This document shows positions 3,001 through 48,412 of a stretch of DNA of 64,000 bases, piece by piece. This stretch comes from Oopsacas minuta (lineage: Eukaryota > Animalia > Porifera), in assembly GCA_024704765.1 (NCBI GenBank), contig JAKMXF010000322.1, forward strand, positions 248,001 to 312,000, given 5' to 3'. Below the pieces are notes generated by a model that was not told where the DNA came from, searched no databases, and worked only from the letters and a program-made list of their open reading frames with translations. Every line of letters starts with the position of its first letter. The stretch's first letter is position 1. Position numbers and translations under genes: made by a program.

Positions 3001-6000
3001 TTTTATTGGTGATGCGACGTTTGCTAATACATTTGGCGTAGAGTTTGTATTCCCTGAATTGTTCAATGAGGGGACCCCAGCCCTTCCTGGCTTCTTAACT
3101 TTTGAATCCGACGATCCATCTACGATTTCTATCGATGCCCAGACTGGTGTCGTAACTCTAGGACAGAATTCTATTGAGAATATGGTGATATTATCCGCGA
3201 CTACGGCGAATACTACCAAATTTACTTCTTTATTTGCTAACCTTCAACCAGAATTGGGAGATATTGATATTGGAGATGAGTTTGGTGTACCTATTCCACC
3301 AAAAACTGTAAGTTATGAGTTTCATTTACATTATCCCCCCTTTAACTAACAATTATAATCATTTGTAGTTCCTTCTCCTAAAATGCCTCTTATTCCTTCA
3401 CACAAATATGTTTAGTATTACAATAAGGATATCCTCGAATTCCCTTATAACATTTTGATAATCTGTCTGAAAAGTTTATTCCAATAAAATATTCAGTGAA
3501 ACTTCCATAAATGGGCAGTGGAAACTGAGTGAAAATTATATAGACCGAATTCCGATTCCCCTACAATTGAACCTCTACATTAACTGGGTAACCTTTTTCA
3601 GCGTTCTGGAACACGTTAATGGACGTTACCCTGTAATACATATTCGTTATTACTTCCTCTATTTTCTAGCTTTTTACACCATTCACTATTCCAATCTACC
3701 TTAATACAGATGGAAAAACCCTCGGTCTGGTTGATGTTTCGATAAATTTTCCAAACGGTAGCTTTTCATTTGTATCATTTACCCGAGGTCAAGATTGGCT
3801 GCAAGGAGATGTGTTTTACAACTCTGATCCAAAATATGATTTTTTCAACTTTGGTGGGTTAGTTGGAAACCTGGCAAACCCAGGGAGAATGCTTTTATGC
3901 GATCTAGAATTACTACCCTTAACAATTGGGACATACCAATTGGAAATTACAATCAATCAATTATCCGAGAAATCTCTAATTGTTGAAGAAATCGGAGATT
4001 TTATCGGGATGAATTCAATTTCGACACAGCACTCCATTGTTGTTACATCAGGATCCCGATCTGTCGAGACAAATTTCTTCCCAGTAGAGCGCCGGTTCAG
4101 AAGGATTGCCCCTGCACTCACACTTGGGGATATTAATGGTGACGGCTCTTTCGATATGAACGATGCTCAATTCTTGTCGTTGAGTTTACTAGCTACCTCA
4201 GATTTTTCTTCTGAGCAACTGGAATTGTCAGATTTAGATTTGAATGGGGAAATTAATTCGAATGACGTCACCTACCTTATCAAAGTTAATTTCGGCTTAC
4301 TACCATTCTTGTACAACTTCGTGCTGCTACCAGCTGATGATCCATTTTCAAATTGTGTCCTTACAGTTAGTGTATCTGCTTATGACTTTGATGGGCCTGT
4401 TGATGATTCCAGGATAAATATATTTGCTCTATTCATAACCAATGATACAGATTTTCATACTCAGTATGATTTAACTTCACTGGAATACGGAACCAAAACA
4501 AATACAGACTTTTCAACCCCAGTGAATGGAAAATGGGTTTCACTTGAAACTAATCCCAATGCGACAGATAATTTTGTCCTCCGTACTGACTTGAATGACA
4601 TAAACTCTACAGACATAGGTCTTGCTATTCACATTGTGTATTTCCCAGCCTATACAGAGATATATACAATATTCCTATCTGGCATTCAGACAGACTCATC
4701 TCCTTTATACCCATCATTTTTTGATATCATCGAGCTTGCTGATGTATCTCAATCAATAGAATTCACACCATTACGCGTGTTTGATAACACAATTCCAGAG
4801 GGCGTATGCTTCAATTACCATCCTCCCATATTCGATCAACTCGCCTACCCTATAACTACTCCACTCTCTGAGAATCATCCCATCAATTCCCTGATTGAAG
4901 TTGTTAGAGCTACTGATCAAGACACGAATATTAATGGTGTTATTCGATACTCTATAAATGCGATTAATTTCGCTGGAATCACTCAATCACCTTATCCACC
5001 AGTTCCAGTATCAGTCGACCCCATAAATGGATCAGTTTATGTAATTGGAGAGTTAGACCGTGACCTTTATGCAAGAATAGAATTTGTGATCTGGGCCATT
5101 GACCAAGGACCCCACCTTTCATCTCGTTACACCGCTACGACAACAATCCAAATCCTCACAATCGTTGACGTCAATGATAATGCACCCCTATTCGTATCAA
5201 ATCTCTTGTTCAATATAAATGAGAACACACCACCAACCACGCAAGTAGGCACTGTTACAGCCACTGATTCCGATGCCACTTCTCCCAATAATCAAGTCAC
5301 ATACTTAGTTGATGGTTCTTCAGGGCCATTTGTTGTATCCCAGACTGGAGTTATTACCGTAGGTCAATTTATCGACATTGATAACGGAAATCCTAGCGAA
5401 TACACATTTACAGTGATTGCAAGAGACGGCGGAAATCCTACATTATCATCAACAGCTAATGCCACTGTGAATATTAACGATCTTAACGATATAGCTCCCG
5501 AATTCCTGCCGCCATTCATTCTGAATATTCCCGAAGATGCTGCTACAAGCACTGTTATCGGTACAATACGAGCAAGGGATAATGATACTGATATTGCTCA
5601 TGCACAATTTACTTATTCTATAACTGGCGTTAAGTTGCTTGACGGAGATAAGAATCCTGTTAATCCAGATCTACTAAGTATGAACTTATTCTCCATAGAT
5701 GAAGATACAGGCAATTTGACATTGGAACAAGTAAGTTTGATTTATCCAAAAATTCTCGTATTTTGTAAATTTCAAATACTTTTTCGAATTGGTATTACTG
5801 TGGCAGACTGTACCATATATGTATAGCAGCCATAGCCCACAAATTGTCGATTTCATTGAAGGAAATGTGATAGCCTGATCCCAAAAATCTTCACGACAAT
5901 TTTCACACATTTATTCATATACGTATATTCAGGTTGTAATTTTGATATTTAAAAGCAGTTTTAAGAGCTTAAAATTGTGATTTTAAATGATTTGTGATTT

Positions 6001-9000
6001 TCTCTAGCCTTTGGATATTGAAACTGCTCAAGGCTACGAACTATTGATAAAAGCAACTGATCTTGATGTGGCAAATCAACTCGACTCATTTTCCACTTAT
6101 TACCTCTATGTCTGTGATGTAAACGATAATGCACCAATATTCCCACGAACTTCTTACTTAATTGACCTCCAAGAAATTACGAATGTTGGCGAAGCTGTGT
6201 TTTCAACTGGGAAAATTGACGCAGATTTTGGTTCATATTGTGGCACTGACACTGCACTCACAAACAATAATTATCTACTTAACATCACTATAGTGAACAG
6301 TGATCCATCCATATTTACAGTAGATAACGACCTGCAGGCCATTACCCTCCTTACAGAAGTCGACTTCGAAGCCCTTGGCACACAAACTTACTCTCTTATT
6401 ATACAAGTTGATGACATATCGCCTCCTTTCCAACCAAATCGAACGAATTTAACCATCACACTCGTAGACTCAAATGATAATGCACCGATTTTCGATGATC
6501 GATCATATTTCGCTGAAGTCCCAGAAGGATTGAAAAATGGTACTGAAGCTTTTATCACCGTCTCTGCAACAGATGAGGACTCCGGCTTAAACGGAGACGT
6601 AAAATTCAGAATTCTATCAATCTCACCTCCTCAAAATTTCACCATCGACGTAGATACAGGCGATATTACCACAGATGGGGTAATTACATTGGATGCTGAT
6701 GCCAATGACACACTATATACCTTATTAGTTGTGGCATATGACTTGGGTGTCCCAGAACAAAATGCTACTGTTACTGCAGAGATTTTAGTCACTAATACAA
6801 ATGATAATGTGCCAAAATTCGTCGACGTGGATGAGACTATAATTGAGAGCGCTTCTATTACTGTATTTGAAGATATTCCCAAGAATACAGCAGTTTATAC
6901 AGCACGTGCTGTTGATGGAGACCAAGATTTCCTGTATTTTTCAATTTCAAACGATCCAACAGGTACATTCACTATTGGTGAGATATCTGGTATAGTGTAT
7001 TCGGCAGCAGATGATTATTGTAATGACACAAGCTATACTTTGGCTGTAATTACAATTGAAGTGAGAGACCGTCTCGATCTTTCTGCAGCGAAATTTGCAA
7101 CCCTACCTCTTACTATTAACGTGGTTGATGTTAATTCCAATGCCCCACAATTTTGTCCATCCGTGTTCCCAGTTACTGCACCGTCTCCTCTCGTAAGCGG
7201 CGCTACCATTGGCGAATTAACACCATTTGATATTGACAGATGTAACAAGGGATTTGTATATTCAATTATCGGTGGCGCTGATGCTGGTAAATTCACATTC
7301 AACGTAAATAACCTTGAGACTACAACCGGCATTACCTTTACTGAGGGAGAAGAATTTGAGATTGAGGTAATGGTTAGTGATACAGGCTCTACAAATGTTC
7401 TTAGTTCAACTGCGACCGTTTTAATTGTGTTAACACAATTTGTACCAATCGAATTGGAAATTACAAACGGATATCTCACTTCCCTACCTAGTTACAGTCA
7501 ATACAGTGTAACTCAAGAGTCGGATTTGTTCACTCAAATTTCCCCCAATTTGGACGGATCCGTTTCTGCATCGCTTGGCACTCTAACTGATACTTTCAAG
7601 TTCAAACATACACCATTGCCAGCCACTGACTTCAAAGTTGATCTGATTTGTCCGATCTTATACGGTGACGTTGGTTATAACTTCCTATGGGTTTCTATCC
7701 AACGCAGGACTGAGCTTCAATCCACCGATATTGATGGTGATACTCAAATTATGGTAAAAGCTGAAAATGGGCCTCTGATTGTTGAAGAAATATTCACGAT
7801 TTCAGATCCAAATGGAATTGAAATTTTACAAATTCAATTTGAAGCTTCGTGGTTTGATATACCGTACAATCAGGATCTAAATTTGGAAATCAGTCTCGTA
7901 AGCACACCAGAGATTTCCCGTAACATTTCCTTCGAAATTAATCCATACTACGATTTACCAGACATTGATCCTTCTCTCGGTAACCTAATCTTTAGAATCC
8001 CTCAACGCAATCTATATCCAGGAGATATATTCCAGATTGAAGTGTATGGAGAAGCTTTAGGCTCAGAATTAGATAGTTTAGGTTTCTCAATTACATCCGA
8101 TAGCAGTGACATCACTTTCCTCAGCGTGGACGCCATACCTGGATGGTCTGTCGGATTTAGTTCCACCGGATTGACGGCAAATATCGCGGCATTCAGGGCT
8201 TCCCCAGGCACTGTAGAGGGCAAAAGATACTTATCGATCGATGCTCGAGTTGAGAACACGATTTCAGCTAGTCAAGTTGATGTCAGGATTAGTTACACGA
8301 TTGTACAGCTAAGTACAGCCCTCGAAGCTAGCGTACCATTGGAATCAACTCGATATGTCATTTCATATGAAGGGATAGCTGAATCTGGCCTACTTTTTAT
8401 AATACGTAAGTTTGTATCTGCAGTATACGCGGTTGCTAGTACACCACACATTGTCAATACAGCAGTGCTAACCAATAATCCAGTATTTCTATCCTATTCC
8501 GCAAATGCTGTTGTAGCGAGTGCTACGCCTTATCTAACGAATAACGTCGAAATTCTTTCGTGCACCAGTAATACAGGTGTAATTGAAACTGATTCAGGTT
8601 GTAATGCAAGACTTACCCCATCGACTGTGCCAACCAACGACCTTGAAAAACTCACTCTCACAATAAGCGTTAATGACCCTGACGTGATAGAGAGTCAATC
8701 TGATAACGCTAGTTATAGAATATGGACACCTTCTCTGGACGATATATCACTAGATGTCACTGATTCAACATTGAGTATTATTTCAAACTACGAACGCAGA
8801 GTCGCTGGTACCTGTTTATCTGTTTATCAAGAAGCGGACATATATGCTACTACAACACTCCAATACCCAACCGGATCTCCTGTGACAATCCGAATTGAAC
8901 AGCTGATCGCTGACCAGATTAGTCTAACACCTGATACTAGAATACAAAGGACTGGAACTACTATAACAGGATTAGCAGCTGGGGTAACTACACTTACATA

Positions 9001-12000
9001 CGGCTCAAAAACAGTCGAGGTAACCACATCTGCCACGCCAGTGAATGTAGATAGATTGAATGTACTCGCTGCTACAGGTATTACATTTTCACCTGATACT
9101 GAACCTAATTATCCAGTTGTTGGTACACAAAGTGTTGAAGTTGGATATGAACAAGTTTTAGATAGACCTGGCTTAACTGCAGCACTAATTGCCTATGCTA
9201 AATTCAGTGACGGTAATCATAGAATCGTTACGTCATCAGATGGCGTAGAATTCAGTTCCTCAGAGCCTACAGTCGCTACTGTAAGTGGATCAACACTGTC
9301 TATCACTGGGGAAGGAGCTGGTTGTTATATCGGCGTAATTTGGTCATCTCTTGATTCATGTCCAGGTGAAGTTGGTTCGGGAGAAGGATTCATTAATGTA
9401 GAGTTCGATGAACCGGACGACATCCAGTTAATTTTAACTGAAACCGAACTAGTACACATGGCTGATGAAGCTAGTGACCTGCTACCGCTAGAAACCGCGA
9501 TAACCGTCCGTCTCGTATACGGTAGTAACACAATTGATTTGACATCAGATTCAAGAACAGAGTATAGTTTTGAGAATTCGCGATTCCCCCTAACCGAGAT
9601 TGATTGTGGGGTTAATTGTAGAAAGTTTTCGGTCCAAAATCCTGATCATTCCGGCATAGCTACTATTCGTGTCAAATTCTCACATATCACTGCTTTCAAA
9701 GAAATTTTATTAGATATTTATAAATCGATTCGAATAGACTTTTCTTTTACACATGAACCAGCTTTCCCAGGTGCTTCTACCGCCAATGTTTTCCCTCTCA
9801 ACCCGATTGAGGATACAGGTATATTCCAAAAAGCTTCGGTCTCAGTTGACCTAATCCTTGAATCTGGTTTGAAGAGTCAGAATTTTGAGATTTCAACATC
9901 CTCTGATCTTTCCCTCACCACTAATGGTTCTAATATTCTTACGGTGGTGGATCTCATCCTATTGCCTCAGCAAAGCGGGGCTGCTTTATTGACTGGCGAC
10001 TTCAAATCCTTGTCCACTTCTAGAGAAATAATAATAAGTTCCATGTCTGTGGAAGTGGTTGATATTAGTGCTCTATTCTTTACAGACGGCGGCACTTTAT
10101 CTGGACAACAGGGTAATGAAGCGGATAGGTTTCTGATCAATATTGGATTGGATGATGGAACTTTTGTAAATGATATTTTCGCTTCTGGGAGCAACTATCT
10201 TCCCGATTTGTTAACATTCTCTTTTACTAATTACTTCTCGCTTAATGAAATGACCGGAATTTTGGTTATCAACGACAATTCACCTCGCGAAATTCTATAC
10301 ACAATAAGCTCAGATTTTCATATGGAAACATTCACATTCTACGCCAATCTGGAAGCATCCAATGGTGATTTGGATTTTGGTAAACAAACTGGATTACCCA
10401 TTGACCAGCCTGATGGTACAGCGACATCATTTAGTGCACCACTCATGATAAACAGTGGGAAATTGGTAGATGGTACGAAACGTGGCTTAGGTGGTGTAAA
10501 TGGCTACATTGAATTTGATGAGAATATATTTGAAGTAACATCTTTCACGAAACACTTATCATGGCCTGGAGATGTCCTAGATGTCAATATTGATTCTACC
10601 CCCGGACGTGTGTTATTTTCCGCACCTCTGAAAGCCTCTGAGTCTGAAGTTTTCGCGAGTTTATCAGACTCTGTTGAGATTTTCTCTATCGATATGAATT
10701 ACAAATCTGGAATAACTGGTTCCACATTCGACAGCACAGAGATTGTGACGTATATTGAAGATATGGTAGACAGTAGTACACCACCGAGTTCTATTGTAGA
10801 CGATGCCCAGGCAATCGCTGGTACTTTCTCCATTGGAAATATCACTCAGGGGGTCTCTAGACGTAGTGTAGGAATAGAGCCGGCTCGCACTAAGAGACAA
10901 ACTGATTGCGGTGGGAGCCTTGCGCCTGGCGACACTGACGGTGATTGTAGGTTTACAGTAGCCGATGTAACCTATGCTCTGAATTATATTGTAGAAGCTG
11001 CCGGTAATTTCCCTACGCCTGGAACTTATTACAGTGGAGCTAAACAGAGACAGTTAGATGAATTGGACCCGACTTTAGATGGCCTTATTAACTCAAACGA
11101 TCCAAGATATCTGAATAGGATAATAGTCGGTTTCCTTCCCTTCGTGCGGGATGTAGTCATTTTATCCACTCACGAATTTCTCCTATCTAACTGTAGAATT
11201 AGAATAGAAGCTACTATTCTTGATAAATCCAATTCATCGATAATAAATTCGAGGGAAGTTGCATTTTACGCTGGACTATTCGCGACAGAGCCTGCATTCG
11301 AAACAGATATATCAGCTGTTATTCCAGAGTCTAGTTATGGAAGCCAAGTTTCTGACACAGATCAGGATACGAATTTCCACGGTCAGTTCTATAGAACTGA
11401 ATATAACGATGGTAGATATCGTCTCCAATTACGCCCTGAGTTCGATAGTGACTATGATGAGATTGCTGTAATTTTAGCTGTTGCAACCATTAATAACCAA
11501 CTTGAAACTAGCCCAGAAAGAAGCTCAACTTTCTTTATTAATAGCAACACTCAGAAGAAATTCGCTCAAACTTTCTCGAAGACAATAATTGACAATACTG
11601 TATCACTTCAAGTACAGAAAACTGGTGGATTTAATCCATTACGTACTATATCCTACAACCTGACCTATAGTCAATGTAATAACGAGGCGAAACCAAATTT
11701 CACACAACCCTTCTATACTGGCACAGTTCGTGAAGATGCGTTTACAGGTTACGTTGTTTTACAAGTCATGGCTACTGATTCAGACAATTTCACTAATGCA
11801 GAGCTCGAATACTCACTGCCTTCACAACAAGTTAATGGTAAATTCACGATAAATTCAACTACTGGTGAAATATCTGTAGCTGATAGTCTAGATCGTGAGC
11901 TTGAGGATATCTATGAATTCACAGTTACTGCAAAAGACAAAGGTATCTCTCAAGTGCGAACTGGAGATGTTGATGTGAATATTACTATCCTTGATGTCAA

Positions 12001-15000
12001 TGATAATTCCCCGATATTCGAGTTTGACTTCTACGGATTTTATGAATTCTTTGAAAACGCTACATTAGGAACTTTAGTAGTAGTAGTTAAAGCTACTGAT
12101 GAGGATATTCTAAACAACGGACTGATCACCTATAGTCTAGATATGGATTGCGCCAAATATTTTAATGTGTCGAATAGTGGGACTGTAAGTATCGCCAATC
12201 CTTTAGATTATGAAGATGTCCAGGCTTTCCAATGCACCATTATTGCAACTGATAATGGTGTCACACCTAGGAACGACACCACTGACATCAACGTTGAAAT
12301 TAAACCTCTAAATGATTTGCCTCCCCAGTGCCCTCCAACTGTCGAGTTGTCGTTTGCTGCAAACGCGCCTAGAGACCATATTATTGCTATTTTGACCGCT
12401 AAAGATGATGACATAGGTCTTGACCATAATACTTTAGCTTACGAACTTGTTAATTCACACAATGGTTTATTTTATATAAATCAAATCTCTAATAATCAAG
12501 TTGAACTGAGGACAAATATCACTAGATACAACCCAGGTGAAATATACTACGTCACGCTCAATGTAACAGATTTAGTATGGCATTATTGTGTTACCCAGGT
12601 CACTATATTTGTTGAAGAAAGCTCCTACTTCGATTTCAGCTTCAGTGTCCCTAAAATCGCATATTTCCGTTCGCAGTCGCGATACAATTTTGTGGACGAG
12701 GTTTACGAACAAGATATTGGATTCTTTGTGGAAGACAAAGACACAACCAGTTTCGATGCATTTGGTGAACGAGCTGGACAAACTCGAAGCGCTAGGATCA
12801 CGAAGGCACCTCAAGAAGCATTCAGTGTAACAGGAGTAGTCCGTGGCTCTGATAATATTAACTACGATAGTCCTTGGGTAAGAGTGACTGCTCAATTTTC
12901 AAGTGAATCGGGTTCCACATACCTAAACGCCCCAACCAGTGCTTACATATCAATAACCTCCAATAATAGAGGGCTAGTAGACACAGCAGCTATTTGTTCT
13001 GTGGGTGTATTAACTGATGGTATTTGTACAGGAACAGTCGTGCTATCTTCCGAATGGTTCATGTTTGATGATATGGCAGGTGTTAGTATTACCCTAAACG
13101 GAATTGAAACCTACATTCAGGATATAGGTATAATTGTACAACCAAGCATCGATTCTTCTACAACTCAGAATCTAATGCTATCTGTACCGCATCGTGAGTT
13201 GTTCCCTTCAGACGAGTTTGAAGTTGTACTCAGTGCTTACACATATTATGAGCCTATTGGATACACAGTGGATATCGGTTACACAGCCGCCCAGCTTAGC
13301 ACAGTCGTCACACCGCACTATACACCCTCTCCCGGATGGCAGTGTACTCTAAATTCTATGTCTGAGAATAATTCTGTAGTTGAGAGATACGTTTGTGTTT
13401 TCCCTAATACTGATGATCTCGATCAAGGTCGTGTCGATAAATACACAGAACTTCTCACTATAAGATTCAAACTGAGTGCTGGTGCAACAGGTGGAGCCGT
13501 AGAATTTGAAACAAATGGTATTTCCCTTACCGCTATCAACGCGATTGTCTACAGTACTACATCTGGTGCGTCGATACACAAATATGATTCTAATGGATTT
13601 GTAGCTGCAGGTTCCGCGACGAATTATCCTTCAATTTATTTCCAAGAGGATTCAGAGATTCATGTTTTTGGATTTGTAGAAGATAGTGAGATTCTTAACG
13701 ATCTGCAAATTCTTGATGTCGCTACGAAAACAATTTCCGCTGGTATTGCGGTGAAAGGTGTTCGTAAGAACCCAGACACTCCACCAGCACTATTACTTAT
13801 TTCCGATTTCACATGTGAATCAAGTGATCAAACGGTTTTGAAAGTGTCGAACTGTATGCCTTTCCTCGATACTGAGACTGTCACTGGTAGTGATTCTGTA
13901 TCAGTAGAAATCTCTAGATCTGGTCAAATCATCACAACTGTACTATTCAGAGTTTGGATCCCTAGATTAATAACCGGAAACTATTTGGATGTTACTTTCT
14001 CAGACTCGATATTACAACCTATCTCAACATGTCCAGGTTTATACCAACAAACACGTGTCATTATACGCGCAGAATTCGAAACACCAAGCGAAGATCTTAG
14101 CGTTTTATACTCAGATTTCAGTGATATTTCAATTTCAATTCAGAGAAGCGAAGTTGCTCTTTACTCAAATGGAATTGTCACTGTAAACTCTAGTTTCTCT
14201 GAAACTTCCATCACAAATGTTCCCCTGTTTGTAATGAAAGGAGCTACTTCCATTGCTCAAGCTACTCTCACTGTCGATCCAACTTCAAATGTTACCCTTG
14301 AGGTCATTATACCTGAAGTTTTCACAGAAATGACTTTAGAATCCGCCCCAAGCGAAATTACAGATCTCTCTGGTGAAAGGCTATTTATCCGCGCTAAGCT
14401 AACTCAGAATTGTGACGCTGATCTGAAACCAAACTACGTCAGCACCAAAGCTATATTCAGTGACGGGCACACACAGGTGTTGGATAATCTCGTCAGTGAA
14501 TTGGAACTGAAACCATACCCTCTTATCCTCAGACACGCCTCTGGGCTAACACTAGAAGCTTACGGGTCAGGAAGTGGTCCTGTTGAAGTATGTTGGCAAT
14601 GTTCAGCTAATGCTGAGAAATGTGGTGAAACTAGTGTAACATGTTCTATTCCTCCTCCTGATGCCCAATACTTTGAAATTGACTCCCCCAAAATTGCCTT
14701 CCCATTTTCTGTAGCTGATTTAGCTGGCTATGCTAGTGTTGCTACCATTACGGTTATATCGCTTCAATACGGTTCCGAAATTAAAGATCTCCGTTTCGAT
14801 GATAGAACAATGATTACTATTGATGACCCTGAAGAGTTATTTTATTTCAATGACATAACTTTAGAATTTACCGCCCGTACGTCCACGCAATCTGGGTCCG
14901 CTAATATCAGTGTTACTTTCTCACAAGCACCTGACGTGGTCCTTACATCCGTATTACAACTTGTTAGGCATCAAGCCATTGTAGTAACTCTTTCGCCATT

Positions 15001-18000
15001 CCCTTCCTATCTTGGTAGTTCTTCTATTAGCATCGATACTCTAAGGAAAATTACAGGAACAAATGTATACCAACGTGGACTACTATCTGCTGTCCTGATT
15101 ACTACTACTAATGACTTCATTTCTATTTCTCAAATAGCCAACTATACAACTAATGACAGCATTTTGAATATAGGATCTGATCAGTCTGTTACTCCTATTA
15201 CATCTGGCCTGGTTGACATTACAGTCGAACTCTATAACCTGAATGAAAATATCACTGTCAATGTTACGAATGATCTTGTTGGCCTTACTTTTATCGATCG
15301 GTTCGAATTGCCATCAAACACACTTATTGGAGGTTACAATGAAACTCGGCTATTTACATTGGATATCACATTGGAAGATGGGACAAAAATTTTTGACTTT
15401 TTCTCAGATAGTTACTATGGAGCAAATCAAAAGCTAATTACCTTGAATGCTACAACTGATAATCGTGGTGCTATACAGCTACAACAGTATGGCCACGTGG
15501 CAATTCTTGATAATTATTACGGTTTAGTTACAGTGAAAGCTACTGGTGGTAATGTTGAAGCGTTCACTTCGTTCGCAGTCAATCTCGATCCCGCCCTTGG
15601 CGATTTTGATATTGGTGAAAGAACTGGCATCCCTGTTGGGCCATTGGCTGAAGGATCCACCTATACGATTCCTATTCGTGTAAACGCAGGCTCAAGTGTA
15701 TCTGCTTTTGATTTGGAAATAATTTTCGACACAGATGTGTTCGAACCTAGTAGAGCAAATGTCTACTATTCAGGGCAAGTGGCAATTGAATATGACATTC
15801 CATCCAACCCAAATATTTACAAAATAGTTGGTTTATTAGACTCTTCTATCAGCGGACTTGTAGATTTCGGAGATTTTGAATTAACAGTGAAGAGTGACGT
15901 AGATCTTGACTTAACTACAGTCCGTTTGTTAATTGTGGAATTAGTTGACAACAACGAGAACATCGTAACCTCCGATACATACAGTGTAGCCAGTGACCTA
16001 GAAATAGAAATCCTTGGTGATAGGAGAAGAAGTATTGATTTATTGCCCAGAAAGCAGAGAACTCCGAGAATCCGTCGAACACCCGGTGAAATACCTTGTG
16101 GAAAATTTGGAGATATCGATGGCAATAACGCATTCACCGTTCTTGACGCACAAATGGGTCGCGATTATCTTGCAAATCCTGTTGGTCCTCAACCAGCAGG
16201 CCTTGACGTAAACCAGGATGGTCTTGCCGATATCAATGATATCATATATCTTATCCGAGGATTAGCATTCTCTCTTCCATTCCTTTGTAACGTTACGGTA
16301 ACCCCGGCAAACCTGTCAGATTGTACTTTGACAATTAGAATTACGCTTGAGAATTCAGACGGACTTTCCCCATCACCGGACCACACTTTTCCCCATGTAA
16401 TGATTCAGCATAATTACATCAATTCCCAATACAACGACTGGGATGTATCTATAGTTAAGTTTGGTGCCAAATCTAATCCGACACCAAATAGTGTAACACC
16501 ACGTGGTGGTCTATGGGAAGCATATCCCAATGGGAATGGTACTTTCTTGGTGAAAGTTGATACTGCATTATCTGCTTTCTCTATTGGCCTTACCGTCGTG
16601 TTGATAACAGCCAACACCCAATTTGTATCTCTCAGATCAAGGTTCGTATCTTTCTATAAACCAAACAATGCATTTAACTACAATCAAATCCCAAATTTCG
16701 ACATAACTTCAGTTCGTCAGCCGCTCGTCTCACAATCTGATAGTTTTATTGGATCTAGCGGTGGTTATGACCCATTTGTCACTTTTGACAATACCCTGAG
16801 GTCAGATTTATGCCGTTATACGGGGCGACAATATAGCGTTGAAGAAGATGCGGATCCAAGAACTTACGTTGGAGATGTAGGCGCTCTCACTTTAGGGGGT
16901 TCACCGGCCCGCGAATATGAACTAGTCCATCTTGATCCTGTTCCTGTCAATTCCCATTTCATGACAGCTTCAGTAGACATGATAGAAGTCATTCAAACTA
17001 GGGTAGATCTCGATGCAGAGCAATTCGTATTCTATAGCATAGAAATCGAAGCTGCAACGAATATTTATGGGAATTCTGGTAATGGAAGCGAATTCTACTC
17101 ACGTTCTGCTAAATTCAATATTACAGTTATTGATGTTAATGACAGTCCACCTGTGTTTACTGTAACTAAAGAATCTTTCGTAGAATATGAGAATATTGCT
17201 GTCGGAACTATTCTTTTCCAGTTTGAAGCGGAAGACGATGATGAAGGTTTGAATGGATTGATTACATTCAGTATATCTCGTGGTGTAGGAAAGGAGGACT
17301 TCTTTATAAACGCAACATCTGGAGAGCTATCGATTGCTATGTCTCTTGACCGAGAGAGACAGTTCGCTTATCAATTGGAGATACACATCCAAGACAATCC
17401 GGCTATAACCGAACCAAAAACTGCAACATATAATACTACTGTAACTGTATTGGATATCAATGATAATGTGCCTGATATTGTTAGGCCCAGTGGGGAATTC
17501 TTAATTGAAGAGAATAGAACTCCACCTGAATTAATATCAAATGATTTTTTCACAATTATCGATAATGATAACAGCGATAATGGTTCAATTTCTGCTTTTA
17601 TTATTTCTGAAATAAGAGATGATCAAAATCTTAGTGTTGCTATATCGTTATTCCAGTTTGAAATACAATCTCAGGTAAGGAATTTTTCATGTAATTTTTG
17701 AGTCTTTGAGCCATTTTTGGTTCTGAAAATGCTCTGTCCATTATTTTAATTGTACTCACGCATGACACATTACTCTACTTTAGACAACATTCAGAATACA
17801 AACTAATGCAACATTTGACTACGAAGTATCAACCTTCTATGATATCATAATAGAAGCCACTGATGCCGGCACTCCACAATTGACTGGCACTACTGCTATC
17901 CGTGTTAACATATTTGACTTGAACGACAATCCACCTGAATTCAATCAGTCTGTCTATGAACTCTATGCTAACTCGGATAGTTATAATGGACAAAGAATTG

Positions 18001-21000
18001 GGATTGTTACTGGAGAAGATTTGGATTCAGATCCTAACGATAAACTGAGGTACGAATTGGAAGGGTCTGATGCTGGATTCTTCACAGTCAATGAGGAGAC
18101 TGGAGAGTTATATACGGACCGTTCACTGGATAGAGCAATAGGTAAGTTCATACCACAATACAGTGTAACCTCCACGAATTGGGCATATGGAAACGGGGAA
18201 CTTTGGCAACGGAGTGAAAATATATATATATATATATAGCAAATTCCTCGTAGCATATAATTGAACCTCCACAATCGGGGAATTTGGCAGAAACGGGGTA
18301 TTTTCTGTTATGATATGTATTCTCTCTCTAGGTTCATTTTACTCTCTTATCATAAGAGCTACTGACTCCCCAATCAATCCAGCAGATGAGCAAAACGGTA
18401 CAGCAAGACTACAGATATACGTCACGAGTAACGATATATTATCAACACATTTTGAATACGGTCTAGCCAGCAACAGTATAACTCGTGAGAATGCTACATC
18501 ATACAAGGTCCCGATTAGTTTCCTCCTAGCCGACACGCCTGCTACTCTACACGCTTCTTTCGATACAGCTCAAGCTGTAGGAGATATTGTACTTACCCCA
18601 TCCACTCTAAATCCTTCAGGATTTGTGTATATGCTATTGCAGGATGGACTCTATCATGAAGACAAGCTATTGACAGTGGTAGTGCGAGCTGAAGATTCTA
18701 GATTATACCATAGAAATACTGGTAAGTGATAATAACCTATGCCATCATGAAGAAATGGTGTCAAAATGTCTGTAATTCTAAAACCTTGAGTGTTGATCAT
18801 GAAATGAACTTCTGATTTTGCGAAAAAATCTGACCACGTGTTAGAAACTATAACCACTGTTTGTTAGACAAGTTTTGGGTGATTGAATTTGATTCATGTT
18901 TGTTGGTTTGATAATTGAATGAATCTATTATAGGCACAACCATTGATATTGAGGCCTACCCAATTTCGTCAAGCGAAACTGGAGTAATTACTGATCAATG
19001 TACAACTAGCAAGGACACTGGTTTCTGTGTACTTCGTCTCCAAATACCTGACTACTGGTTCAATTCAAGCTTCACTAACGCATTCCTTACATTCAAACAG
19101 AATGGATTTGAACAGTCAAACAGTGTACCGATCCATTACCCATTCGTATCGTCTTCACAGCCAACTGAAGACAGTGCATTTTTTCTAGTTGCGCCTTCTA
19201 CAACCTATTACAGCGGGCAAACCTTTTACGTAGAGGGATATGTCTTAGTGCTTGGCTTCACTGTAATAGAATCAATAGAAGTTATCATCAACGCTAACAC
19301 GAACTTCGGACCGAAGAATACCTGGGTTATTCCTTCTACTTGGGTAGAAATTGATTGTAAGTTTGTCACTGAATAATAAGAAACAATTCCCAAAACTCTA
19401 TTTATACCTTTACAAATGCCTATTCCCGCAGGTAGCCAATCAACAACTACCCCTGCTGGCAGTGCTAGACTGTGTGTTGAGCCTTCTTCTACGTTTGATG
19501 GATTCACTGAACCTCTAAAATTCTTTACTATTCCACTTATCGTGAGTTAACTTTGTAGAACGTTAAGCACGGGCAAACGTATACAGACAATATATCAATT
19601 TTCAATGGGTCTATATAGATGTTTTGGGACCTATTGACCTATTTGAGTGCTGTGGATGCCGGTTACAGTGGTGGGGCATGAGTTATTAAACTGGGGCATA
19701 CTTACATTAATGAAGTGGGGGCACATGCTCCAACTGGTACCCACCCTCTCGCCCCTCTGGCGGGTTATAAAAACGTGTATGGTACTCCCAAAATGGTTCT
19801 TATAACCGGCATCCACTGTTTAACTGAAATCATAACAAATTTTAAATTTGAATTTTATTGTTTTTCGCTCTTTCAGGTATCCGCTTTAAGCCAACCTGCC
19901 TTCGCTAGAATCTCCATCTCAGACTTAGCAGTGTCTGTTAGAATCGATACTCAAGTTGTAACTCTACAGAGTCCTGGGTACTACATCAAAGACAGGGAAA
20001 CTCCAGTTCCAATGGCGACTGTATCACCAGCTCAAGTCCGTGTCGAACCCTTGAACTCTCAATACTTTTACATTGTTAATTACAAAACAAATTCTCTTAT
20101 AAATACAGCTGTATTTGATGGTACAAGAGTATCCGCGGATATTGATGTGTATGGATTCTTGAGTGAATATTCCAGAGAGGTTTGTTGTTATTTACTATAT
20201 ATGTATTATGTATACACTGTAATCCAAAGCGTATTGACATTATCCATGATCTTAATCAAATCTCACTGATATATTTTTACAAATTCGACAACTGCGATAT
20301 TCTATCCATTTTCCATTCCTTTTTTCTGAGGTTCAATCGTCTATATTCCTTCTAGGCTAATCCAAGTAATATCGAAGTAGAAATCCTAACTTCTAGTTTA
20401 CAATGTGCTTCAAGTTCACTCGGGATACTTAAAGTAGAATTGGACTGTTCTGAGATATATCTTGACGGCACAGAGACAAACGGAGGAGAAGTAGAGATCT
20501 CTATTACATCCCCCACCTCTATCCTAAATAATGGACTCATCCCTAAAGCTTTTATATGGTATCCAGACGATGTCACTATTACGTCATCAGATACAATACT
20601 TAATCAAGTTGATTATGCTTGTGCTGCTTCTGTGAGGTTATACCAATCTACTGCATTATATGTATCAGCTATATATAGTACTGGCGTGTCAGGGGAGGTT
20701 GAATTTAAAGCAGATGTTACTTCTAGAGCTAATGTGAGTTGTTTGTTTGTTTGTTTGTACGCCTCTTTGCCTCTTTGTTTGTCTGTTTGTTTATCTACAG
20801 TGGAGTTCGCCTATCAGCAAATCGTATTTTGTACGTATTTATTTCATTTGTTAGTCGAGGAATATTTCCAATCCAAATTGGGATCTAATTCCTTGAAAAT
20901 TGATACTAAACGGGAAATCCACTGTATCTCTCTAATATCTATTTGTTTTGTTGTTTATTGTTGATTACTACTCTACAATATAATAGATCGTTTCTGACAA

Positions 21001-24000
21001 TACTCTACTCAAAATCGCCAAAACATCTGTACTAAGCCCGCCTAAAGCTGGCCCAACATTTGCCCGCCCAGAGCCTTTCCTATCAGCTGATTTGACAGTA
21101 GAATTACGCGTAGAGCACAGTTCAGGAGCAAATTTCCCAAAAAGTTATCCACTACAGATAAGACAGAATAATGTTACTATAAAAGCTCTGCAGATTAAGA
21201 TTATTTCTAGAGTTGGATTCTTTGTCAGTGACACTAGTCCAGGACCTTTCCAAGAACAAGATGTGAGTTTTGTTTATTGTCATAACTTCGCTTTACGCGG
21301 CTTGCGGAATTTCTTGTCCGCGGGCGCTTTGCGTTCTAATATTTTGTATTATAATTAACCTGTGTCAGAGCCTAAATCTGTTTTGACACCTATCCCAGAG
21401 ATATCGCTTAGATCTTATCGCATTCTACGCACATGCTAAGTCTCTACTCTTGCCATTTCCTCAATCAATTCCATTTGTTTTCCTAGGCTACAATATTCTA
21501 TGACGAAGATCTGATATATTCAGCACAGCCTGCACCAGTAGAAGGCTACTTAGTCTACTCAGACGGACACAAAGAGCCGCTATATCCCTCTCTACCCTTT
21601 ACAGATATTAGCGGAATAACCAGTAGTAATTCCTCTATCAATATAGATAATACAGGTAGGAGACTAGTAGTAACAGCACGTAATACAGGACATACTGATG
21701 TATGGGCTACAGTGGATTTCTGTGGAGAGACATATACTGCAGCTACTTCTGTAGATGTGAGTTTGATTAATATATTTGTATTATTATTATCCTGCAGAAA
21801 ATTGTAGTTGCTTTTTCACCCATGGCCATTAGTCTAGTACAGTTGTTCCCAACCCAGCTGGGGTCTATTACCCCTTGGTGGTCCACGGACGACAGCGGGG
21901 ATCTGTAATTGTTTTGCGGTCTATGGGGAGGGCTCTACGGGTGAAGAAGGTTGTGAATCGCCTGTCTAGCACGCTAATAACATTCTCATTTCATATTTTC
22001 ATGAGATAAATAAAGAACTATTTTGTGGAACCTCGGGATTACGGTCGCCCTAATTATTGAATATAGAAATGTTAATGCCTTTAGGAAGGAACTTAAAATG
22101 TGGCATATCCAAATTTATATCCTCTCTCTTTCTCAGGTATTCCTCTCTACAACTCATCCTACCTTCATCTCAGCCTCATACCCCGGTAGTATCACTGAGA
22201 ACTCTGCTATAGGATCTAGCGTACTTACAATTAAAGCTACAAACCCGCAATCTGTCCTACGATCTGAATTACTCTACTCCCTATACCCAGATAATAATGC
22301 GTTTACTGTTAATGCATACACAGGCGTAATCAATACTAAAATAAACCTTGACTACGAATCTGGACCTCAGGTATGTAGCATACATTCGAATATTTAAGTG
22401 GAGTTATTTATGCAATATTTCTTGTTCCTATAGAGCTATACATTCACTGCTCGAGTTACAGACTTCGAGCAAAGACGTTTGTGTACTAATCCTGATGGAA
22501 CCTGTGATAGTTGTAATGTTACTTGTTTCGGAGAGACAACTGTAAGTATATTTTGTAGTTTTGTATTATTTTTGTGGTTACTTATGTCTCTTTTGTATTA
22601 TTTTAATTAGGTTACAGTCCAGATAATTGACGAGAACGATAATCCTCCAGTATGTGTGGTTCAGACAGAACCTGTACTCCTTGATATTGAATCTGTTCCA
22701 CCGAAATATCTCCTAACAGTAACAGTTACAGATGCTGATTCAGGGGATGCTAATCAAGCTACTTCATTTGAGTTATTCACCACTGAATTCGAAGACAGGT
22801 AATTAACAAATATTTCTGATATTACGGGAATTGACTGTATTTATTTCCTTTATTATTGTAGATTTGCAGTTGACTCTGATACAGGAGATTTCAGTCAGAT
22901 TGGCAACCAAACAGCTCGTAATCTCGATCTCACAATTCGCGTAAAAGCATCTCAAACAGCTACACTATTCGATACTTGTGATGTACTAGTTGAGCTGTAC
23001 TACTTTACAAGTACCATTATATTATCAGCATGCCCTATTACACAAGATGCTGACGTCACTGTTGTAGTAGACGTACTGCCACCCTATGTATTTGATGTTG
23101 ATGATATTGGGACTGTTTCTATTGCTGGAATTGAAGATTCAGAGTAAGTATTGATAATGTAGTTAATCGGGGTCATTGCTGGATATTTCCAGTTAATTGC
23201 TTGGCCCCAAATCTTTTGTATATGATTATTTTCACACCTTTTCATATAGGACTCCATCCTGTCAAGACTTGACTCTTATCTTCAAAGACTCAGATGATAA
23301 TGTGTTGAATCCAACTGACGTATTTATGAGTATTTTAGCGAACTCAGCAAATATTGAGTCTGATTTGTTGGCTTTGAATATCGGAAATATTGTAAGTATA
23401 CAAATACCCCGCTATATACACTCAGGATAGCTTAATATGAACATTCTCTTGCTCTTATTATTTATTATAACAAGATTTTTGGTAACTCGGGGTTCACAGT
23501 AAGCGAGCCTGACTGTACTAGTAACCTTTATTTAAAATGAATACGCTTATTTCTAGTCCTTCTATTTGGGTGTAATATTTCACCAGTTCACTTCCTGGAA
23601 GTATTTTCAGTCTACAAATACGATAGCTCAAATATTATCTACTTAGAACTTGTATTTTCAATTCTCCTACTCGTAAAACAGGAATTATAGCCATTTATTG
23701 CTATTAGTATTAGTGTATTGTTTCTATTCTCTAGACATTCATCAATAATGGAGTGTTACCTACCGTAGTACCGCCAACTCCTGCAGATCTAGAAGGTTGG
23801 ATGATAGCTATTATCGTCCTTGTGGTTGTTATCCTGATCCTGATATGTCTTGCTATTCCTCTCATATTCTATCTGAGACGATATAATAGGTAAGATGCTT
23901 ATTCTAATAGCGAATTTCCCCAAATATTCAGTTTGAATATTTTCAATGTTTTATTTTACTATTTTCGCAGACAATTGAAGGAGGAGCAAGAGAGATTATG

Positions 24001-24647
24001 GAATCAACGTAAATCTGTACCGACTGGATACGGCGGCCTAGCTGAAGCAGAATTTGTTTACGATCTGGAAGGGAACTTAGTTTTCAGTCAACAAGGTGAT
24101 ATACCCTTGCAACAGAAGAAATCTACTCTTGATGATGCACCTTGGAAAGGTAAATTGTTAAATAAATTATTGATACAAATATTTAGTCAACTCAAGGGGC
24201 CTAGCTCTATTTGTTTTTTACTCCGTTTCCAGAGGCCCTGTTTGTATAAACGATGAAATATGTTACTTTAACGGTTTGGCCCATATTTGTACAATTTCAA
24301 ACTTCTATATAAGCGGGTATTTCGGGAGTTGACTGTATTATGTTTGAAACTTTGAATCGCAAAAACAAGAAATTTATATTATGTACTTCTTAGGAAAAGA
24401 TTTTGATGATATAGAAGGAGGAAAATCACGGAAACCCTGGCAACAAAAATGGGCCAGAAGTCCAGAAAACCCCCTCTACGATTCTAAGGAGTACCTCGCG
24501 GACTTCCAGAACCCTTTAACAGACGATGAAGGGAAAAGTGGGACAGCAGCCAAGACCCCAACAAAAGGAAGTCGGGCCCGAAAGTCTACAGAAATCGGGC
24601 CTTCGATTGGCGCAGAGGAATCCTACTTAAACCCAACAGCTAAATAA
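18..24647 (+). CDS. Giant coherin-type cadherin (cadherin repeats + TMEM132-like cohesin/Ig modules + cohesin-dockerin cassettes + TM); 5'-partial, about 6,900 aa inside the window
   Basis: Hand-spliced GT-AG exons: 18-826, 996-1262, 1327-2037, 2183-3307, 3670-5730, 6008-17674, 17784-18141, 18332-18721, 18934-19356, 19432-19541, 19877-20179, 20356-20733, 20987-21262, 21487-21756, 22137-22370, 22434-22541, 22611-22798, 22862-23143, 23250-23391, 23475-23498, 23735-23889, 23971-24149, 24394-24647. All phases are compatible and the chain ends in TAA at 24645-24647. It has many cadherin motifs (DxNDNxP, LDRE/LDYE, AxDxD), one TM helix and a short tail. The base-18 acceptor shows the gene continues upstream. 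Confidence 0.9.
2076..2139. mobile_element. Short MITE with 15-bp perfect inverted ends (TTGTTTCAGCTCCAC)
   Basis: TTGTTTCAGCTCCAC...GTGGAGCTGAAACAA; appears to be an internally deleted version of 53405-53678. Confidence 0.65.
3239..4310 (+). other. Cohesin - furin site (RFRR) - dockerin cassette A
   Basis: NLQPELGDIDIG...FTIPIYLNTDGKTLGLVDVSINFP is cohesin-like. RRFRR lies at 4090-4104. Two 12-residue Ca loops follow: DINGDGSFDMND and DLDLNGEINSND. Confidence 0.8.
4820..7440 (+). other. Cadherin repeat block 1 (7 EC repeats)
   Basis: Successive linkers DVNDNAP, DLNDIAP, DVNDNAP, DSNDNAP, NTNDNVP and DVNSNAP, with LDRD/LDIE/VDFE motifs. Confidence 0.85.
10346..11143 (+). other. Cohesin - furin site (RTKR) - dockerin cassette B
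   Basis: NLEASNGDLDFG...FSAPLMINSG...GVNGYIEFDENIFEV is cohesin-like. RTKR lies at 10886-10897. The loops are DTDGDCRFTVAD and DPTLDGLINSND. Confidence 0.8.
11680..12610 (+). other. Cadherin repeat block 2 (3 EC repeats)
   Basis: LDRE, DVNDNSP, LDYE and LNDLPP motifs. Confidence 0.85.
15581..16282 (+). other. Cohesin - furin site (RIRR) - dockerin cassette C
   Basis: NLDPALGDFDIG...YTIPIRVNAGSSVSAFDLEIIFDTDVFE is cohesin-like. RKQR lies at 16049-16060 and RIRR at 16067-16078. The loops are DIDGNNAFTVLD and DVNQDGLADIND. Confidence 0.82.
16815..18430 (+). other. Cadherin repeat block 3 (4 EC repeats)
   Basis: DVNDSPP, LDRE, DINDNVP, FDYE and DLNDNPP motifs. Confidence 0.85.
21840..21964. 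mobile_element. hAT-like MITE (CAGYKGTTCCCAACC-type termini)
   Basis: CAGTTGTTCCCAACC...GGTTGTGAATCGCCTG. Related sequence occurs at ~24828-24878, ~27981-28149 and ~48976-49070 (CAGCGGTTCCCAACCTTTT...CCCATAGACTGCAA). Confidence 0.55.
22137..22990 (+). other. Cadherin repeat block 4 (2 membrane-proximal EC repeats)
   Basis: ITENS, LDYE, DENDNPP and VTDADSG motifs across four small exons. Confidence 0.75.
23798..23875 (+). other. Transmembrane helix of the coherin
   Basis: WMIAIIVLVVVILILICLAIPLIFYL followed by basic RRYNR. Confidence 0.9.
24262..24336. mobile_element. MITE family 1 partial copy (last coherin intron)
   Basis: GTTACTTTAACGGTTTGGCCCATATTTGTACAA...GGGAGTTGACTG-TA. Confidence 0.65.
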
Positions 24648-47185: not shown

Positions 47186-48280
47186 CTAAGTATATTGTTG
47201 AAAAGTATTTTTTGGCAGTTTTTTCGCGAGTTTGGTTAATTTTTTCTTCGTTGCTTTATCCATTCGTTTCAGCGTGCCTTGAGAATGGAATTGAGATGAG
47301 TCCATGTTCGCGGCTTGTCTTACCTCGCTATATAATTGCTGATTCTGCTTAACTCGCTGTAGAAATTCCACATTTTGTAAATAATGAGCTATTTTATAAT
47401 CTTCAAAAACTTGATTTTCAGTCTCGTCCGGGTCAATGGGTACATCTAGCTCTTCAAGTTTGAGTGGTAATCGAAAAGGAGAGATACGGCCCTCTCTGGT
47501 ACGAGAAATCTCATCGTTTGGCCCTGTGGAGAACTGAGCAATAGGCGTGTCCGGAAAAGATTTTGCACGAACTGGGGCTGAAATTCGTACACGCAGGAAA
47601 TCATTAGGTAACGGACCGATTAATACAGTTTTACCGTTAACATTAAGCCGATTTGTTTCCCCCTTCTTCCATTTAGTGAGATAATCCTTAGGAGGTGAAA
47701 TCGGTGCTTCCGGTCGCAATATACCCACACTCGTGTTAAACCGTTTTAATTCTGGATGCTGCCCTAATCTCGGTTTCTCTTGGGTCTGATTTTTCGTGAA
47801 TACAGGTAACGAAGCGTTTATATCAACAGATTTTTCTGCAGGGAAATAGTATGCATCTAGATCATCATAACACGGCGGTAATTCAAATGAATCTACACCA
47901 GGAACTGTTGGGGGAGATACAGTATCCATACTGGATGGATTAGTTAACTGAAATAAGTCATGTGTAGCAGCTTCTATATTACCTCGTTTCTGTCTTAATA
48001 TGTCCATTATAACTGGGCTATCTATGTCAGGGAATAACTGTGATAAATGTGTGAGTCTATCGTCAATGCCCATAGGTTGAGCATATTCAACACGTATTTC
48101 ACTTGAAGTTGGTGGTGACGTCATGAATCTTTCACGCGCTGGAGGTGGTGGTCTACGTTGTTTGTTTTGTTGTTGTGCCTTGTTCACAACACGATGAGCA
48201 TTTGTTTTTTTCTGTGCAGCAGTTGATCTTTGTGGTTGCTGTTCATTATTTTGATGTTTATTACTCAATAAAGGATTCAT
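47186..48280 (-). CDS. CUEDC1: CUE domain-containing protein 1-like
   Basis: CUE domain LSQLFPDIDSPVIMDILRQKRGNIEAATHDLFQL, plus CUEDC1-type blocks LIGPLPNDFLRV, EDYKIAHYLQNVEF and LKRMDKATKKKLTKLAK. Single 364-aa ORF. Confidence 0.82.
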   Translation of the reverse strand: MNPLLSNKHQNNEQQPQRSTAAQKKTNAHRVVNKAQQQNKQRRPPPPARERFMTSPPTSSEIRVEYAQPMGIDDRLTHLSQLFPDIDSPVIMDILRQKRGNIEAATHDLFQLTNPSSMDTVSPPTVPGVDSFELPPCYDDLDAYYFPAEKSVDINASLPVFTKNQTQEKPRLGQHPELKRFNTSVGILRPEAPISPPKDYLTKWKKGETNRLNVNGKTVLIGPLPNDFLRVRISAPVRAKSFPDTPIAQFSTGPNDEISRTREGRISPFRLPLKLEELDVPIDPDETENQVFEDYKIAHYLQNVEFLQRVKQNQQLYSEVRQAANMDSSQFHSQGTLKRMDKATKKKLTKLAKKLPKNTFQQYT

Positions 48281-48412
48281 TCTATAAAGTTAGCTCTAAA
48301 CAGTAGATTATTGATCAAATATGCAAAAATGGTCATTCAGAAGTTACGTGACGTAACCAAGGGGAGGTATAGACAATGTATAACAGCCCTATTTATATAA
48401 TATCACTAATTA

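Follow-up and report, generated by a model that had tools for sequence, protein, structure and literature searches.

A giant glass-sponge cadherin with three cohesin-dockerin pairs set across predicted convertase sites

What would a cohesin-dockerin pair do in an animal adhesion receptor? Such pairs rank with the strongest non-covalent bonds known between proteins, and they are regarded as a device of the microbial cellulosome. A window of 64,000 nucleotides from the glass sponge Oopsacas minuta (contig JAKMXF010000322.1, positions 248,001 to 312,000; coordinates below are those of the window) raises this question, because a single very large cadherin gene encodes three of them in series, each with a furin-type basic site in the loop between the two partners. 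A first-pass annotation had proposed that the predicted cleavage products polymerise head to tail from a membrane anchor. We lean, with modest confidence, towards another answer, in which the gene product would be a chain of four pieces in fixed order and 1:1:1:1 stoichiometry, clipped together by three calcium-dependent cohesin-dockerin clasps.

Gene Model and Domain Architecture

Positions 1-24647 of the plus strand hold the 3' part of the gene, whose start lies upstream of the window. Small exons are followed by a giant exon (6008-17674) and by about 17 more exons up to the stop codon at 24645-24647. Read from 6011, the giant exon is an open frame of 3,896 aa, and the two large open frames at 3811-5823 and 6011-17698 encode 4,567 aa together. 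None of the public sequencing runs carries an RNA label; run X4, whose recorded kind is unspecified, behaves as RNA and was used as RNA-like data. The depth of its contigs was in the thousands on predicted exons versus about 7-16 in three intron bins, and the gene was highly represented in this run. GT..AG joints were found in X4 contigs from 18720 to 18933, 19356 to 19432, 19541 to 19877, 22541 to 22611, 22796 to 22860, and 23391 to 23735, while loose contig ends fit the junctions 20179 to 20356, 21756 to 22137, and 23144 to 23251. The other splice sites were taken from the sequence and phase-checked; the junction between the fifth and sixth exons of module D (~20733 to ~21048) is approximate. 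We conclude that the gene is expressed and spliced as modelled.

Cleavage at three basic sites would divide the encoded protein into four pieces. The N-terminal piece ends in module A and cohesin A (CohA). The second piece runs from dockerin A (DocA) through seven extracellular cadherin (EC) repeats and module B to CohB, and the third from DocB through three EC repeats and module C to CohC. The membrane piece, after the third basic site, consists of DocC, four EC repeats, module D, two EC repeats, a transmembrane (TM) helix, and a tail. The EC counts of 7, 3, 4, and 2 were recovered by DxNDxxP linker motifs and also by a self-trained EC profile, the last repeat being weak. Pairwise identity among modules A, B, and C is about 25%, and all three carry immunoglobulin (Ig) domains of the TMEM132 type. 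The parts made of several exons (module A, CohA, module D, distal EC repeats, and tail) were searched exon by exon. The motifs in the three linkers, the domain scores, and the EC counts bear out the architecture that the first-pass annotation had assigned to the predicted cleavage products, including the placement of a dockerin at the N-terminal end and a cohesin at the C-terminal end of each internal piece. The features are, from 5' to 3':

158..3349 (+), module A, TMEM132-like Ig and extra Ig-like domains, several exons, part of the N-terminal piece; the module B/C profile is colinear with it at 62-544, 1342-2013, and 2189-3322, and the Ig_TMEM132_5th and 6th matches are weak
3242..4092 (+), cohesin A up to the linker, split by an intron (~3311-3708); profile match 3679-4332, expectation value (E) 6.8e-13
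4090..4104 (+), basic site 1, R-R-F-R-R; predicted new N-terminus at 4105
4126..4330 (+), dockerin A, two 22-residue calcium-binding repeats; Pfam Dockerin_1 30.8 bits, cut-off 22.9
4822..7435 (+), seven cadherin repeats of piece 2, by EC profile and Pfam Cadherin; intron 5731-6007 within the third repeat
7436..10348 (+), module B, TMEM132-like core and extra Ig-like domains; Ig_TMEM132_4th and Big_2 matches weak
10349..10810 (+), cohesin B; AlphaFold2 (AF2) model with nine strands and a predicted local distance difference test score (pLDDT) of ~90; 6kgc_A match
10886..10897 (+), basic site 2, R-T-K-R, in a loop with pLDDT <50
10931..11146 (+), dockerin B; 2ccl_B match; 81% mean identity, six orthologs
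11147..11689 (+), post-dockerin beta domain B; packed rigidly with CohB and DocB in the AF2 model; ortholog identity 67%
11690..12574 (+), three cadherin repeats of piece 3, by EC profile; best Pfam Cadherin stretch aa 1902-1994
12575..15583 (+), module C, TMEM132-like core and extra Ig-like domains; Ig_TMEM132_4th 36.6 bits, cut-off 27
15584..16015 (+), cohesin C, by Pfam Cohesin, AF2 model, and Foldseek
16067..16078 (+), basic site 3, R-I-R-R, within the predicted disordered loop
16109..16294 (+), dockerin C; Pfam 21.4 bits; two predicted helices with pLDDT ~90; ortholog identity 71%
16829..18435 (+), four cadherin repeats of piece 4, by EC profile; introns 17675-17783 and 18142-18331
18436..21756 (+), module D, TMEM132-like core only, by contig joints and profile mapping; cohesin, basic site, and dockerin all lacking at its end; seven exons (to 18720, 18933-19356, 19432-19541, 19877-20179, 20356-~20733, ~21048-~21260, 21487-21756)
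21757..22136 (+), GT..AG intron; contig depth ~8 vs thousands on exons
22137..23144 (+), two membrane-proximal cadherin repeats, the second weak; Pfam Cadherin E 1.6e-10; exons 22137-22370, 22434-22541, 22611-22796, 22860-23144
23251..23391 (+), juxtamembrane exon; contig joint and loose end; kept in orthologs
23735..23889 (+), TM-helix exon, hydrophobic run MIAIIVLVVVILILICLAIPLIFYL, then RRYNR; ortholog identity 75-81%
23971..24647 (+), cytoplasmic tail in two exons (23971-~24148; 24393-24647 including the stop); motifs NPLY, NPLT, YLNP

Fold and Identity of the Cohesins and Dockerins

By their models, cohesins B and C have the fold of type I cohesins, a jelly-roll beta sandwich with nine strands. 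CohC matched Pfam Cohesin (PF00963) with E 2.3e-4 and 21.8 bits, just below the cut-off of 24.1, and its AF2 model was aligned by Foldseek with type I cohesins at E 2e-8 and a TM-score of 0.73. In agreement, the model of CohB gave a VIA Z of 13.6 with the type I cohesin 6kgc_A, with a root-mean-square deviation (rmsd) of 2.9 over 135 residues. The dockerins are of type I, a family defined by two 22-residue repeats that each combine a calcium loop (D or N at positions 1, 3, 5, 9, and 12) with a helix. DocC scored 21.4 bits with Pfam Dockerin_1 (PF00404), just below the cut-off of 22.9, and the model of DocB was superposed on the type I dockerin 2ccl_B of C. thermocellum over 62/62 residues (Z 9.7, rmsd 1.8).

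The three paralogous cassettes have diverged from one another (cohesins 24% identical, dockerins 37%), and every dockerin has its own fixed helix signature. Within each dockerin, the two repeats are unlike each other; a dual binding mode is not expected, because the symmetry that it needs is absent.

Basic Sites in the Cohesin-Dockerin Linkers

The motif R-X-[KR]-R was found only three times in the 4,567 aa (RFRR at nt 4093, RTKR at nt 10886, and RIRR at nt 16067), where composition predicts about 0.24 occurrences, an over-representation of about 12 times. All three fall in the three cohesin-dockerin linkers of ~30 residues, one in each (P ~2e-6). The cut-site loop is, moreover, the only disordered stretch in the AF2 models, with pLDDT 40-54.

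Five sponge orthologs of the giant exon encode proteins of 3,877-3,903 aa with 57-81% pairwise identity; these closest relatives came from European Nucleotide Archive assemblies, and the annotated Sycon ciliatum protein is more distant. The window gene and the five orthologous loci (L001-L005) are referred to here as six species. In each of the six, junctions B and C carry R-X-[KR]-R, a motif that is otherwise nearly absent from the 3,900 residues. At junction A, the orthologs have RSKR (three loci), RRAR, or RRTR; RRFRR or RSKR is therefore present in four of the six species, and the R-X-X-R form, RRAR or RRTR, in two.

A second basic motif, R-R-S/K-R-S, ends the last cohesin strand (window ~10856-10870 and 16028-16042). 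Its Arg, position R155 of the 34-row cassette alignment A1, is invariant in the 34 aligned cassettes, and the motif is also found in the choanoflagellate Salpingoeca rosetta (RRRRS). The R-X-K/R-R site lies 8-25 residues downstream of this motif, and ~10 residues at site 2 (RRS). By analogy with proinsulin, the two basic motifs together could permit the excision of a short connecting peptide. The part that precedes the membrane is probably luminal, because a single TM helix is placed at the C-terminal end and a signal peptide is present in the relative P0115. A furin-type substrate has R-X-K/R-R, or at minimum R-X-X-R, in an exposed loop of a protein of the secretory pathway and is cut behind the last Arg. 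Motif, exclusive location, conservation, and predicted disorder are all those of such a substrate, and cleavage at these sites is predicted.

The same data bear on an alternative in which the basic sites are left uncut, or are cut in a minor fraction of the molecules, and the pair acts in cis as an intramolecular latch that hides ~25-90 residues of slack until opened by force, or as a stiffener of the stalk. The rigid cis unit described below is predicted whether or not the chain is cleaved, about 11% of the cassettes have no basic pair, and some others have K-K only, which would suit a latch. Against the latch, the motif is ~12 times over-represented and confined to linkers, is conserved as R-X-[KR]-R over six species and from choanoflagellate to sponge, and sits in the one disordered, exposed loop, as convertases need. 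We regard the uncut latch as unlikely.

Predicted Docking of Neighbouring Domains

Two cassettes were modelled with AlphaFold2. For cassette C, a 255-aa segment comprising cohesin, loop, and dockerin was modelled with alignment A1, and this gave pLDDT 78 and a predicted TM-score (pTM) of 0.76, with nine strands, two helices, and one disordered stretch that holds the basic site. For cassette B, the segment was extended to the domain after the dockerin (451 aa, alignment A2), and the model reached pLDDT 84 and pTM 0.87; the sole internal stretch below 50 was residues 176-192, the RTKR loop. The cohesin makes up ~38% of the residues in this model and is joined to the rest by the disordered loop only. 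From the definition of pTM, a value of 0.87 should mean that the cohesin is confidently placed against the dockerin and the following domain. The models thus suggest that a cohesin and its own downstream dockerin, together with the next domain in B, would form a single rigid unit, docked in cis. In a shape search of the ESM Atlas, the alignment covered the cohesin part alone and gave no independent check of the docking geometry.

Conservation among Orthologs

In L001-L005, all 15 downstream exons are present in the same order, the TM helix and tail are conserved in all five loci, and cadherin exons fill the upstream flanks. Across the six species, dockerin identity is 81% (B) and 71% (C) versus an ectodomain background of 58-62%, and the domains that follow the dockerins are 67-71% identical; dockerins and following domains are the best conserved parts of the ectodomain. 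The cytoplasmic tail, at 83-92% identity, is the most conserved part of the gene. Its motifs NPLY, NPLT, and YLNP look like NPxY-type adaptor-binding sites.

Distribution of the Cassette

When a profile of A1 was searched against 1.84 billion cluster representatives, 3,107 proteins matched at E <= 1e-3, 810 at <= 1e-10, and 257 at <= 1e-30. Among the best 149 matches, 128 had at least one full cassette: 88 had one, 22 two, 17 three, and 1 four. In 189 cassettes, 23-90 residues (median 48) separate the first calcium loop from the invariant Ala in the last strand of the cohesin. Of these spacers, 128 contain R-X-[KR]-R and 18 R-X-X-R; 22 have some other dibasic pair, and 21 lack any basic pair. 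Both repeats of the dockerin have D or N as calcium ligands in nearly all of these cassettes, with Asp at positions 1 and 12 in 187-189.

A complete protein with a single cassette was found in S. rosetta (PTSG_01972). It consists of a signal peptide, a TMEM132 4th Ig domain, a cohesin (Pfam 37.3 bits, above the cut-off), the sequence RRRRS...RARR, a dockerin, a TM helix, and a short tail; the cassette is therefore older than animals. Other relatives also show the TMEM132 2nd, 5th, and 6th domains. In many of them the TM helix follows only 180-450 residues after the last cassette, and a membrane stalk with a dockerin and without a cohesin is the norm of the family. Three cassettes are also present in a second, distant family (P0006-P0013), which is 28-30% identical in the cassette. 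In a tree of the A, B, and C cassettes with those of the distant family, the deep branches were poorly supported and long branches met; no positional orthology emerged.

Two relatives with other arrangements were also observed. P0014 (Sycon ciliatum LOC135829591), a cadherin of a calcareous sponge, has three cohesin matches at aa 387-525, 1111-1255, and 1838-1982, with 725-residue spacing. These cohesins continue directly as cadherin repeats, and basic site and dockerin are both missing, which shows that variants with a cohesin alone occur. In P0107 (2,385 aa), a single cassette is followed by a predicted TM helix and cytoplasmic ankyrin repeats (Pfam Ank_2, E 5.5e-24).

Module D and the Membrane Piece

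Module D had been described in the first-pass annotation as homologous to the other modules and as lacking the terminal cohesin and dockerin, and profile mapping agrees with both parts of this description. A module profile made from two sequences lacked the strength to locate module D, and tblastn searches with modules B and C missed it; it was placed by a module B/C profile built from 12 sequences, with 1,292 positions of which 1040-1292 are the cohesin-dockerin part. Module D matches positions ~165-725, i.e., the first ~55% only, and the cohesin-dockerin part of the profile had no match downstream of the giant exon, either in the window or in the five orthologous loci. Two modules exceeded the Ig_TMEM132_4th cut-off, C with 36.6 bits and D with 29.7 bits, and there were weak matches to the 2nd, 5th, and 6th domains in A and D, the Ig_TMEM132_2nd match being among the weak ones in D. 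It is more apt to describe module D as the TMEM132-like core by itself than as a copy that was damaged; in modules A-C, extra Ig-like domains, the cohesin, the site, and the dockerin are added to such a core. The membrane piece has its dockerin, and a cassette-type cohesin was found in none of the six species. The absence of a canonical cohesin noted for this piece thus held in the window, and that noted for the membrane-proximal module held in all five loci.

A missed exon in 21757-22136, which might have supplied a cohesin or dockerin, was ruled out by three observations. RNA-like coverage was near zero there; the contig that starts at 22137 was preceded by 16 letters identical to 21741-21756, i.e., 21756 is joined straight to 22137; and in L001 and L004 the exons that flank this interval form one uninterrupted frame with no intron. 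The gene model of the first-pass annotation, with no exon in this interval, therefore stood. The intron is present in the window and absent in two of the five orthologs (L001 24987-25511 and L004 25443-25961); it was gained or lost within the ortholog group. Inside module D and at the same intron, contigs from the DNA runs (X1-X3) broke at 19682-19720, 19819-19863, 20796-20829, and ~21900 with unrelated loose ends, and DNA depth was ~3 times higher in bins 19640-19839 and 21840-22039. The breaks and the raised depth suggest repeated, transposon-like elements inside two introns.

The TMEM132 module is expected to hold a cohesin-like third domain (PMC6030884), and a weak PF23039 match was obtained in the relative P0013; this domain was not confirmed in the modules studied here. 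Comparison of the internal TMEM132-type domain with the cassette cohesin by hhalign gave a probability of 9%, which is not significant, and a profile search of the PDB with the internal domain returned no match. A 'CLIPPER domain' match (9ifr) was dropped, as it concerns isopeptide-bond domains of bacterial adhesins. Elsewhere in the window, positions 48001-52000 are very AT-rich, with a GC fraction of 0.23-0.29 vs ~0.36-0.40.

Proposed Assembly of the Four Pieces

For the chain of clasped pieces that we favour, we infer cleavage, binding, an order of events, and a mechanical role as follows. The gene product is a giant type I membrane cadherin. One ancient unit recurs in it: cadherin repeats with a TMEM132-like Ig module, then a type I cohesin and a type I dockerin with a disordered, convertase-site loop between them, and a beta domain after the dockerin. 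In the calcium-rich endoplasmic reticulum, each cohesin would fold against the dockerin next in the chain and dock with it in cis. Convertases such as furin act late, in the trans-Golgi, and it is there that a furin-type enzyme would cut the exposed loop; the second conserved basic motif may be cut too, with excision of a short connecting peptide. For FAT1, cleavage in the trans-Golgi is likewise stated (PMC3953070). As neighbours in the uncut chain would dock at very high effective concentration and the convertase would come late, the binding sites should be occupied before the cut. At the cell surface, four polypeptides would then stand in their original order, 1:1:1:1, held by three non-covalent, calcium-dependent clasps, and the last piece (DocC, four EC repeats, TMEM132-like core, two EC repeats, TM helix, and NPxY-type tail) would be the membrane stalk. 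The clasps would be joints or break points at defined places, which give way under force or when calcium is lost, and not ends for polymerisation.

Several observations weigh against this chain. Cleavage is not universal, since 21 of the 189 cassettes have no basic pair and some others have K-K only, and in the distant family the third linker (e.g., P0006 4536-4816) has K-V-S-K-K-Q in place of R-X-R-R, a joint that, from its sequence, may use another protease or no cut. DocA, DocB, and DocC have in common S/I-N at positions 10-11 and K/R at 18 of their second helices, so some cross-reactivity is possible. Docking in cis was read from pTM values and not from a view of the interface, and AF2 may dock any linked cohesin-dockerin pair; the models would then indicate compatibility and carry no information on specificity. 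Finally, many of the database proteins are single-exon calls from eukaryotic assemblies, so that a protein holds at least as many cassettes as were counted in it.

Pieces may be exchanged between molecules once a clasp has ruptured. In a stronger form, to which we give a small chance, the cohesin-dockerin pairs would be mutually orthogonal, re-pluggable connectors, and a piece would re-dock on the matching end of another molecule or cell after rupture. If this were true, the receptor would be a modular, self-repairing, order-coded tether and a pre-animal eukaryotic counterpart of cellulosome assembly, and some of the dissociation and re-aggregation that sponge cells classically show in response to calcium could have its basis here.

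Open-ended polymerisation, the proposal of the first-pass annotation, is not supported. Pieces 2 and 3 would join head to tail by promiscuous or non-neighbour binding and give variable filaments or cell cross-links that start from the dockerin-only membrane piece. Both pieces do have their dockerin and their cohesin at opposite ends, but such joining needs CohB-DocA, or CohC with DocB or DocA, all non-neighbour pairs, and in the AF2 models the neighbour pair is placed as one rigid unit, so that the sites would be occupied before cleavage. Cross-binding could draw on the recognition-position residues that the second helices of the three dockerins have in common; the paralogous cohesins and dockerins are nevertheless only 24% and 37% identical, yet each is conserved across six species. 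The three-cassette layout is kept in the second, distant family, and the high representation of the gene in the RNA-like run would also favour this model; however, the cassette is single in most relatives (88/128), and its general job therefore cannot be polymerisation. The very large N-terminal piece, with a cohesin only, would cap any chain. Nucleation in the manner of an anchoring scaffoldin, also proposed, fails on polarity, as a membrane anchor that bears a dockerin is the reverse of the bacterial arrangement. Taken together, we find polymerisation improbable.

Least probable of all is that distal pieces are shed as soluble or matrix-bound cadherin fragments that the pairs re-capture or sort, or, in a variant, that the dockerins bind the internal TMEM132-type cohesin-like domains of their own or of another molecule: FAT1 ectodomains are shed too (PMC3953070), and such a third domain of cohesin-like type is expected in each module including D (PMC6030884; PF23039 weak in P0013), but stable association is favoured by how strongly the dockerins are conserved and by the rigid complex predicted for neighbours, and the internal domain has no significant similarity to the cassette cohesin (hhalign 9%).

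Comparison with Known Systems

Cadherins with a cohesin (coherins), and a TMEM132-type block in coherins, lefftyrins, and hedglings, have been published (PMC6030884). Coherins were defined by Nichols et al. 2012, as cited in PMC6030884, by cadherin repeats plus a cohesin, and are known from choanoflagellates and sponges; as far as that citation goes, the protein described here fits, with cadherin repeats, cohesins, and relatives in S. rosetta and sponges. The TMEM132 module consists, in order, of a conserved N region, a cohesin-like domain, and three Ig domains that are BIG2-like (Sanchez-Pulido and Ponting 2018). The present protein resembles coherins and the TMEM132 ectodomain in its cadherin repeats, its cohesin, and its TMEM132-type Ig domains, which would follow a putative cohesin-like domain in the same order, and differs from coherins, as described in the literature searched, in the dockerin placed directly after the cohesin, the three cassettes in series, and the fourth module without a cassette. 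Vertebrates have no detectable dockerin (PMC6030884). In the literature searched, a scope outside which Nichols 2012 and Peer 2009 fall, we found no description of a dockerin right after a cohesin with a convertase site between them, and no paper that joins dockerin with cadherin and furin, or dockerin with Monosiga in this sense.

By analogy, the closest structural counterpart appears to be the bacterial type I cohesin-dockerin complex and the closest functional one the furin-cut FAT1/Fat heterodimer. Like the cellulosomal type I pairs (C. thermocellum 1OHZ and 2CCL; C. acetobutylicum 6KGC), the cassettes have, by their models, the same folds and duplicated calcium loops with D or N at 1, 3, 5, and 12, but they are only 10-23% identical in sequence to the bacterial modules. 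Unlike in cellulosomes, where the partners are on separate proteins, they are neighbours in one animal polypeptide with a predicted cleavable loop between. In an anchoring scaffoldin, cell-bound cohesins receive dockerins, whereas here the membrane piece carries the dockerin.

Notch S1 and receptors with GAIN or SEA domains are other examples of receptors that are cleaved and remain associated. In FAT1 and Fat, a cut in the secretory pathway leaves an N-terminal ectodomain piece and a membrane stalk that are held together non-covalently (PMC3953070). The sponge protein is, like FAT1 and Drosophila Fat, a large adhesion receptor with a predicted cut followed by a non-covalent hold; unlike in FAT, the holding device would be a cohesin-dockerin pair, and there would be three cuts in series versus one. 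The arrangement suggests a different use of the pair, which straddles a convertase site so that an adhesion receptor would be cut yet stay assembled, here three times over. If confirmed, it would provide naturally diverged eukaryotic cohesin-dockerin pairs for protein engineering and, in ancestral family members with a dockerin partner, an evolutionary context for the orphan cohesin-like domain of human TMEM132. It would also be a third way to cleaved-but-associated receptors, beside GAIN/SEA autoproteolysis and the furin-cut FAT/Notch type.

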